From Pocillopora damicornis (taxonomy: Eukaryota), in the NCBI RefSeq assembly GCF_003704095.1, contig NW_020845260.1, positions 62,001 to 126,000 on the forward strand: a DNA stretch of 64,000 bases, written 5' to 3'. A program made the position numbers and the translations under genes. Position 1 is the stretch's first letter. Each line of letters begins with the position of its first letter. Below the pieces are notes generated by a model. The model did no database searches, was not told where the DNA came from, and was given only the letters and a program-made list of their open reading frames with translations. Shown one piece after another: positions 58,381 through 58,453 of this stretch.

Positions 58381-58453
58381 GGTCCGTTAGCTCAGTCGGT
58401 AGAGCGTGGTGCTGATAACGCCAAGGTCGTGAGTTCGATCCTCACACGGACCA
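58381..58453 (+). tRNA. tRNA-Ile-GAT: tRNA-Ile(GAT), perfect cloverleaf
   Basis: GGTCCGT/ACGGACC-A, GCTC/GAGC, TGGTG-CTGATAA-CGCCA, GTGAG-TTCGATC-CTCAC; T6 at 58462-58467. Confidence 0.95.

Follow-up and report, generated by a model that had tools for sequence, protein, structure and literature searches.

A selectively maintained tRNA-Ile(GAU) gene family in Pocillopora damicornis and its probable role in decoding AUU and AUC

The 64,000-nucleotide stretch of the Pocillopora damicornis genome analyzed here (the window; C1895:62001-126000 of an assembly of 234,350,878 bases in 4,393 contigs) contains at 58381-58453 a gene for a tRNA-Ile with the anticodon GAU, i.e. with guanosine instead of adenosine encoded at position 34 (G34 instead of A34). 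We consider it probable that a functional cytosolic tRNA-Ile(GAU), predicted to be transcribed by RNA polymerase III (Pol III), is encoded here, that the gene is a member of an anthozoan family which is old and kept by selection, and that GAU is apparently the main or only anticodon reading AUU and AUC in this coral.

Eukaryotes have been described as having replaced G34 tRNAs by tRNAs with inosine at this position (I34) for Ile and seven other amino acids; I34 is called essential as G34 isoacceptors are missing, and G34 tRNAs are regarded as even potentially harmful in eukaryotic translation (PMC8266599). An earlier note on this stretch had accordingly named the GAU anticodon atypical of eukaryotes, a fair description with the restriction that humans, too, express Ile-GAU genes beside AAU and UAU, with phenotypic effects of GAU (bioRxiv 10.1101/2021.04.22.440519). 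The unusual feature here is the apparent lack of AAT rather than the presence of GAU.

Results

The window gene and its structure

As outlined in Table 1, the gene at 58381-58453 comprises all elements of an intact Pol III-type tRNA gene. ARAGORN and Rfam returned the same verdict, tRNA-Ile with anticodon GAT on the forward strand, and the RF00005 model was matched over positions 1-71 of 71 with 69.5 bits (E 4.2e-13; gathering threshold 29 bits), which is the top tRNA score by Rfam in the window. Altogether, 22 tRNA genes were called in the window by ARAGORN and 26 by Rfam. Pairing is standard in 21/21 cloverleaf stem pairs, the anticodon loop CTGATAA (58412-58418) consists of seven nucleotides with T33 and A37, and reading of 58381-58453 revealed no encoded CCA. 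The A box agrees with the consensus. The perfect cloverleaf with A and B boxes and T6 terminator described in the earlier note, as well as the eukaryotic Ile type of the body, were thereby corroborated. Judging from this Ile-type body, the anticodon and A73, the tRNA is expected to be charged with isoleucine by isoleucyl-tRNA synthetase (IleRS). Since position 34 (58414) is encoded as G, the gene lies outside the A34-defined substrate set of the deaminase ADAT2/ADAT3.

The sequencing runs in which the stretch occurs bear coral or marine metagenome labels. In order to compare independent material, contigs of two DNA runs (with two organism labels) and two RNA-library runs were aligned to 58250-58600 at a likeness of at least 80%, with variants reported from 2% upwards. 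No alternative letter was found at 58414 in these contigs, while variants were reported at neighboring positions; all aligned contigs of the runs X1, X9 and X17 carry G. The contigs of the RNA library X17 span the 58381 gene without differences, yet they span the flanks of paralogous copies as well and display neither transcript ends nor levels.

Table 1. Positions of the isoleucine tRNA genes, relics and gene elements; positions without a contig name refer to the window.
Feature	Position	Strand	Basis
tRNA-Ile(GAU), intact, "master" of the cluster family	58381-58453	+	ARAGORN, Rfam RF00005, stem pairs
Anticodon of the 58381 gene	58414-58416	+	Sequence reading
A box, internal Pol III promoter element, tRNA positions 8-19, TAGCTCAGTCGG	58388-58399	+	Sequence reading
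B box, T arm, internal Pol III promoter element, AGTTCGATCCT	58432-58442	+	Sequence reading
T6 run, Pol III terminator, 8 nt 3' of gene	58462-58467	+	Sequence reading
Ile-GAT, intron-bearing, CNNM-linked	C4221:299881-299988 (L002:389-489)	-	Synteny
Ile-GAT, intron-bearing	C787 (L003:351-448)	-	Exon identity to C4221 gene
tRNA-Ile(AAT), intact, metagenome ERZ1740055	L046:3140-3213(-); L049:2715-2788; L086:914-987(-)		ARAGORN
Ile-GAT copy, 3 differences from master (95.9% identity), broken G4.G69, probably decaying	47198-47270	+	ARAGORN, Rfam, BLASTN
Ile-GAT copy, compensatory T5-A68, also C27.A43 mismatch and C60>A	32238-32310	-	ARAGORN, Rfam, BLASTN
Ile-GAT pseudogene, G18G19>AA, broken G31.G39	25140-25212	+	ARAGORN, Rfam, BLASTN
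Ile-GAT pseudogene, 5-nt insertion in anticodon arm, 34 bits	10113-10190	+	Rfam, BLASTN
Decayed Ile relic reading AAT, sole AAT in window	55715-55780	-	BLASTN, pattern scans
Decayed Ile relic reading GAT	56727-56795	-	BLASTN
Decayed Ile relic reading GAT, missing from earlier note	42531-42599	-	BLASTN
Decayed Ile relic reading GAT, missing from earlier note	18988-19046	-	BLASTN
Decayed Ile relic reading GAT, missing from earlier note	45046-45112	-	BLASTN
Ile-derived mini-gene without the whole anticodon arm	3656-3704	+	BLASTN

Selection on the gene family

The 73-nucleotide master sequence recurs unchanged at C1895:2471, C1895:2963, C1895:120381 (the window gene) and C872:1853, and the copy at C1895:40166 deviates from it by a single difference (98.6% identity). 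The alignable flanks of the five best cluster copies are just 78-90% identical, compared to 98.6-100% for the genes; a neutral identity of about 86% would predict some 10 differences over 73 nucleotides. In the damaged copies of the window, divergence from the master reaches about the level of their flanks. As the damaged copies follow the divergence of the flanks and the masters do not, the cluster is to be understood as a birth-and-death array with a good Ile gene for every few duplicates. The earlier note had regarded the family as a whole as maintained, which holds for the G34 gene, kept by selection, and not for most of the extra copies in the window, which are decaying duplicates. Features of a short interspersed element (SINE) or another retroposon were not found: intact copies stop at the terminator 8-12 nucleotides 3' of the gene, dispersed Ile-GAT loci lack shared flanks, and conservation of the master copies exceeds that of their flanks.

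Isoleucine genes across the assembly

Throughout the assembly the intact copies of this Ile body are all GAT, while AAT is represented by two decayed relics only. Among the dispersed intronless GAT genes an intact one at C1122:406027 shows C27-G43 as a compensatory pair, and copies on C2827 and C2969 are flawed. Two intron-bearing Ile-GAT genes, on C4221 and C787, share identical exons and contain introns of 28 and 25 nucleotides, respectively. A 3'-anchored pattern (anticodon loop and T loop) unveiled no AAT tRNA of any body over 234 Mb, and neither did a 5'-anchored pattern (D arm and anticodon loop) over the same 234 Mb. For both scans the match counts were at or below those of a reversed-pattern control, and the same pattern designs recover GAT and TAT genes. 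The tRNA-like AAT candidates that emerged (L009-L012, L133-L136) failed ARAGORN and were rejected. GAU is thus likely to be the only decoder of AUU and AUC in this coral, and we infer that AAT is also absent from the unassembled third of the genome. In the AAT relic outside the window (C2969:394254-394328; L001:455-529, minus strand) the D arm contains an insertion, the loop reads CTAATGA and G1 faces T72; a flawed GAT copy is located 2 kb away.

Three intron-bearing Ile-TAT genes were located at C1689:~122130, C2193:~146826 and C3328:~233290 (minus strand; L018, L019 and L020). Their body is unlike that of the GAT genes, the introns of ~36 nucleotides have diverged while the exons are almost identical, and the default mode of ARAGORN misses them. 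They were found with a D-arm-anchored pattern; a T-arm pattern had only given elongator tRNA-Met and arm-deleted Ile mini-genes and was discarded. In the cluster at C1122:400000-418000 (L013, L014) tRNA-Lys(TTT) alternates with elongator tRNA-Met(CAT); these Met genes carry a 12-nucleotide intron after position 37, and in the T arm they do not differ from the Ile master.

A conserved and syntenic gene beside CNNM

The intron-bearing gene on C4221 lies directly upstream of, and divergent to, exon 1 of a gene for the metal transporter CNNM. In this coral and in four other coral assemblies (L027-L030) an Ile-GAT gene is found in divergent orientation 100-230 bp upstream of CNNM exon 1. The CNNM proteins of these four assemblies are 84, 79, 76 and 71% identical to that of P. 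damicornis, and their linked Ile-GAT genes contain introns of 25-27 nucleotides at position 37/38. In Nematostella vectensis (GCA_000209225.1, DS469512.1) an Ile-GAT gene is positioned about 700 bp upstream of CNNM (L033:9234-9306, minus strand), which has no intron and exhibits a compensatory C28-G42 pair. Neither the octocoral Dendronephthya (L032) nor another, more distantly related anthozoan assembly (L031) has a tRNA within 10 kb of CNNM.

The covariation of these genes was analyzed in two alignments. Alignment A1 (nine sequences, 27 pairs) displayed standard pairing in 100% of the cells with double changes in 7 pairs, and 0/500 shuffles were as good. Alignment A2 comprised 16 distinct intron-bearing genes (from L002, L003, L027-L030 and 13 metagenome genes) and was 99.3% paired; a T-stem pair that covaries and one G.U change were the only exceptions to invariant exons, and the intron hairpin covaried in 6/6 pairs. 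The exons of the intron-bearing genes align without gaps to the intronless genes, the intron filling the 37/38 gap. There are two conserved types of Ile-GAT genes: an intronless one in shuffled tRNA clusters and a single-locus one beside CNNM, which is intron-bearing in stony corals.

As stony corals and a sea anemone share G34 at an orthologous locus, G34 is far older than the cluster in the window. The earlier note had proposed an in situ switch from A34 to G34 with subsequent amplification; with G34 common to the CNNM-syntenic gene of five coral genomes and Nematostella, and with almost every Ile gene of this type from coral metagenome contigs being G34 as well, this is not supported as the history. 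The conservation in sister species on which the note had made its proposal depend was, in turn, observed in the related corals and in Nematostella.

Position 34 in metagenome contigs

JGI and ENA metagenome contigs were scanned for the 5' half of the Ile body, with either A or G admitted at position 34. Among the matches, position 34 was G in 90/93 and A in 3/93, all three of the latter originating from ERZ1740055. ARAGORN analysis of the retrieved 352 kb yielded 92 Ile-GAT versus 6 Ile-AAT genes. Half of the AAT copies (3/6) are degenerate, being located inside coral tRNA clusters and showing extra defects, and the other three represent one intact gene at three loci of ERZ1740055 (Table 1). 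Its acceptor and D arm are those of the GAT body, with compensatory changes in the T stem (ATGAG/CTCAT). The guanylate cyclase exon beside it shares 64% identity with Nematostella and with Montipora alike, which indicates an anthozoan-like organism. Consequently, the A34/G34 state differs between anthozoan lineages. For comparison, no tRNA was found beside the soluble guanylate cyclase gene in Nematostella and two other assemblies (L130-L132).

Two further observations were made in these contigs. A tandem array of nine Ile-GAT genes with a spacing of about 85-900 bp occupies MKWU01011644.1 (L113) 2776-5344 on the minus strand, 3/9 of its genes being identical to the CNNM-linked gene of Nematostella. 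In the contigs L102 and L107 ARAGORN called three 77-nucleotide "tRNA-Pro(GGG)" genes with an oddly long D region, which may be mis-parsed or unusual tRNA-like units.

Decoding and the inosine system

By the standard wobble rules G34 should read AUC and AUU, and not AUA. The tRNA-Ile(GAU) would pair with AUC via G34-C and with AUU via wobble to U, so that A-to-I editing by ADAT2/3 would be unneeded, and AUA would be left to the separate intron-bearing tRNA-Ile(UAU) genes. Reading of AUU and AUC without ADAT, as proposed in the earlier note, is the most likely use of the gene; the note's further statement that GAU cannot read AUA is in line with dedicated tRNA-Ile(TAT) genes at three loci.

The inosine system as such is present. 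ARAGORN detected A34 genes for Val, Ala, Pro and Thr in the window, Ala-AGC outnumbered Ala-GGC by 22 to 1 in the metagenome sample, and an exon on C2698 with HAE and PCxxC motifs has human and mouse ADAT2 as its best match (E 5.5e-45). With A34 genes and ADAT2 present, isoleucine appears as the exception in an existing deaminase system, and as ADAT2 is intact the G34 state is not a by-product of deaminase loss. Codon usage over 1,489 codons (ATT 60, ATC 26, ATA 30) is a small sample and uninformative.

Other isoleucine copies in the window

ARAGORN and Rfam agree on Ile-GAT at 25140, 32238 (minus strand), 47198 and 58381, to which Rfam adds 10113; solely the 58381 copy is fully intact. The upstream flank of 47198 matches just 25140 and 10113, at 81-83%. 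The earlier finding that the readable copies are GAT except for one decayed AAT was reproduced and extended by the relics at 42531, 18988 and 45046. As the copies descend from one another, the reported six GAT out of seven amount to one inherited state and not to six independent observations. For the 32238 copy the exchange of C5-G68 for T5-A68 is indeed compensatory; its reading as a sign of selection could not be retained, because the same copy carries C27.A43 and C60>A. Compared with master-type loci this gene is 94.5% identical and its flanks about 84-86%. Furthermore, arm-deleted Ile mini-genes, in which the D arm is joined straight to the T arm and followed by a T5 run, were found at three loci (window 3656-3704, C2114:~3590-3670 and C4008) and may represent a mobile or co-amplified tRNA-like unit.

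Discussion

Comparison with known systems

In its body (acceptor, D arm, TGGTG-CTNATAA-CGCCA), its Pol III gene layout and its AUU/AUC task the coral gene resembles the eukaryotic tRNA-Ile(AAU), which is edited to IAU by ADAT2/ADAT3. It differs in that G is encoded at position 34, so that deamination is neither needed nor possible, and AUA, which I34 reads, would be unreadable. The human tRNA-Ile-GAT is likewise a nuclear animal G34 Ile tRNA, very similar to its AAU isoacceptor; in humans GAU is a third isoacceptor beside AAU, whereas in the coral no intact AAT was found and GAT is multi-copy, deeply conserved and partly intron-bearing. With the bacterial, archaeal and organellar tRNA-Ile(GAU) the coral gene shares the anticodon and the expected decoding (AUC by Watson-Crick pairing, AUU by G.U wobble), without any sequence kinship beyond general tRNA features. 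For AUA the coral uses an intron-bearing eukaryotic UAU tRNA, in contrast to the lysidine- or agmatidine-modified CAU tRNA of the bacterial and archaeal system.

The CNNM-linked coral genes resemble other intron-containing eukaryotic tRNA genes (Ile-UAU, Tyr-GUA, Leu-CAA) in their short intron, which has a conserved hairpin and is positioned directly 3' of nucleotide 37, the canonical site in eukaryotes. The syntenic Nematostella gene is intronless, and to our knowledge no intron is known in any other Ile(GAU) gene. Ile-GAT or G34 in Cnidaria was not reported in the literature searched, outside of which the main comparative surveys may fall; existing genome annotations probably list these genes already.

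Weighing of the alternatives

Several observations speak against the interpretation given here. Of the 349 Mb estimated for the P. damicornis genome the published assembly contains 234 Mb, without high-identity repeats (PMC6208414), and an AAT array could hide in the remainder. Genome-wide RF00005 scoring covered 63/19,702 candidates, so that the isoacceptor counts are based on the anchored patterns instead. With the intact AAT version of the same body in the anthozoan-like ERZ1740055 the G34 state is not uniform across Anthozoa, and the codon usage, small as the sample is, does not favor ATC as the cognate codon of G34. Within the window the "multi-copy family" is one good gene plus debris, with most copies damaged, and gene conversion could contribute to the identity among the master copies. 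Finally, the RNA-library coverage is alike over gene and flanks, for which DNA carry-over or read-through could account.

With respect to these points, GAU could be a minor extra isoacceptor as in humans, where AAU, GAU and UAU occur together, the normal Ile-AAT genes residing in the unassembled third, e.g. in a high-identity tandem array. The incomplete, repeat-poor assembly, the location of the tRNA genes in repetitive arrays and the AAT gene at three loci of one anthozoan-like organism would fit such a situation. We nevertheless regard it as unlikely, as ~273 Mb of contigs from two independent DNA runs contain no A34 among everything at least 80% like the gene, and ~80 JGI coral metagenome contigs, chosen regardless of A or G at position 34, are all G, the rare AAT copies being otherwise defective. 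Moreover, both structure-anchored scans of the 234 Mb were devoid of AAT tRNAs of any body, and multi-copy, conserved genes such as those for GAT are not what a marginal isoacceptor would show.

That a single mutant pseudogene without any role in translation has spread by SINE-like or segmental expansion is very improbable. The copies at 47198, 32238, 25140 and 10113 and the five relics, which are structurally defective and have diverged at about the same rate as their flanks, would agree with it, as would the anticodon-arm-deleted derivatives at three loci, and the RNA-library contigs do not establish expression; the master copies, however, are identical within flanks of 78-90%, the synteny of a single-copy GAT gene extends from corals to Nematostella, its exons being invariant and its stem changes compensatory, and no alternative decoder of AUU and AUC emerged from the two pattern scans. 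An organellar, bacterial or symbiont origin of the G34 gene, by insertion or contamination, might come to mind because bacteria and organelles use G34 for Ile and symbionts and bacteria are present in coral samples. The eukaryotic Ile body, the oligo-T Pol III terminators, the lack of an encoded CCA and the location among tRNA genes of eukaryotic type (A34 Val, Ala, Pro and Thr) argue against it, and with a paralogue bearing a eukaryotic-type 37/38 intron and the synteny with the animal CNNM gene in six genomes a foreign origin is effectively refuted, its probability being close to nil.

Implications

Beyond the window gene, the comparison points, with a confidence slightly above even, to a wider scenario: stony corals, together with one or more lineages of sea anemones, would have taken Ile out of the inosine system and would read AUU and AUC by G34 only, with ADAT2/3 kept for the remaining boxes; in stony corals one Ile(GAU) gene would have acquired a structurally conserved intron, and another anthozoan-like lineage has A34 on the shared tRNA body. 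If this is true, one of the eight eukaryotic I34 boxes has been reversed in an animal clade, and a natural A34/G34 swap is available for studying the eukaryotic preference for inosine. Conserved G34 decoding of Ile, together with A34 genes and ADAT2 for the other boxes, would constitute a natural counter-example to the view of a general replacement by I34. It opens direct tests of the inosine preference, of the evolution of ADAT substrate sets, of an adaptation of the position 32/38 context or of IleRS recognition, and of the role of a conserved intron in a GAU tRNA, and it bears on codon-optimization and translation models for corals and Nematostella.
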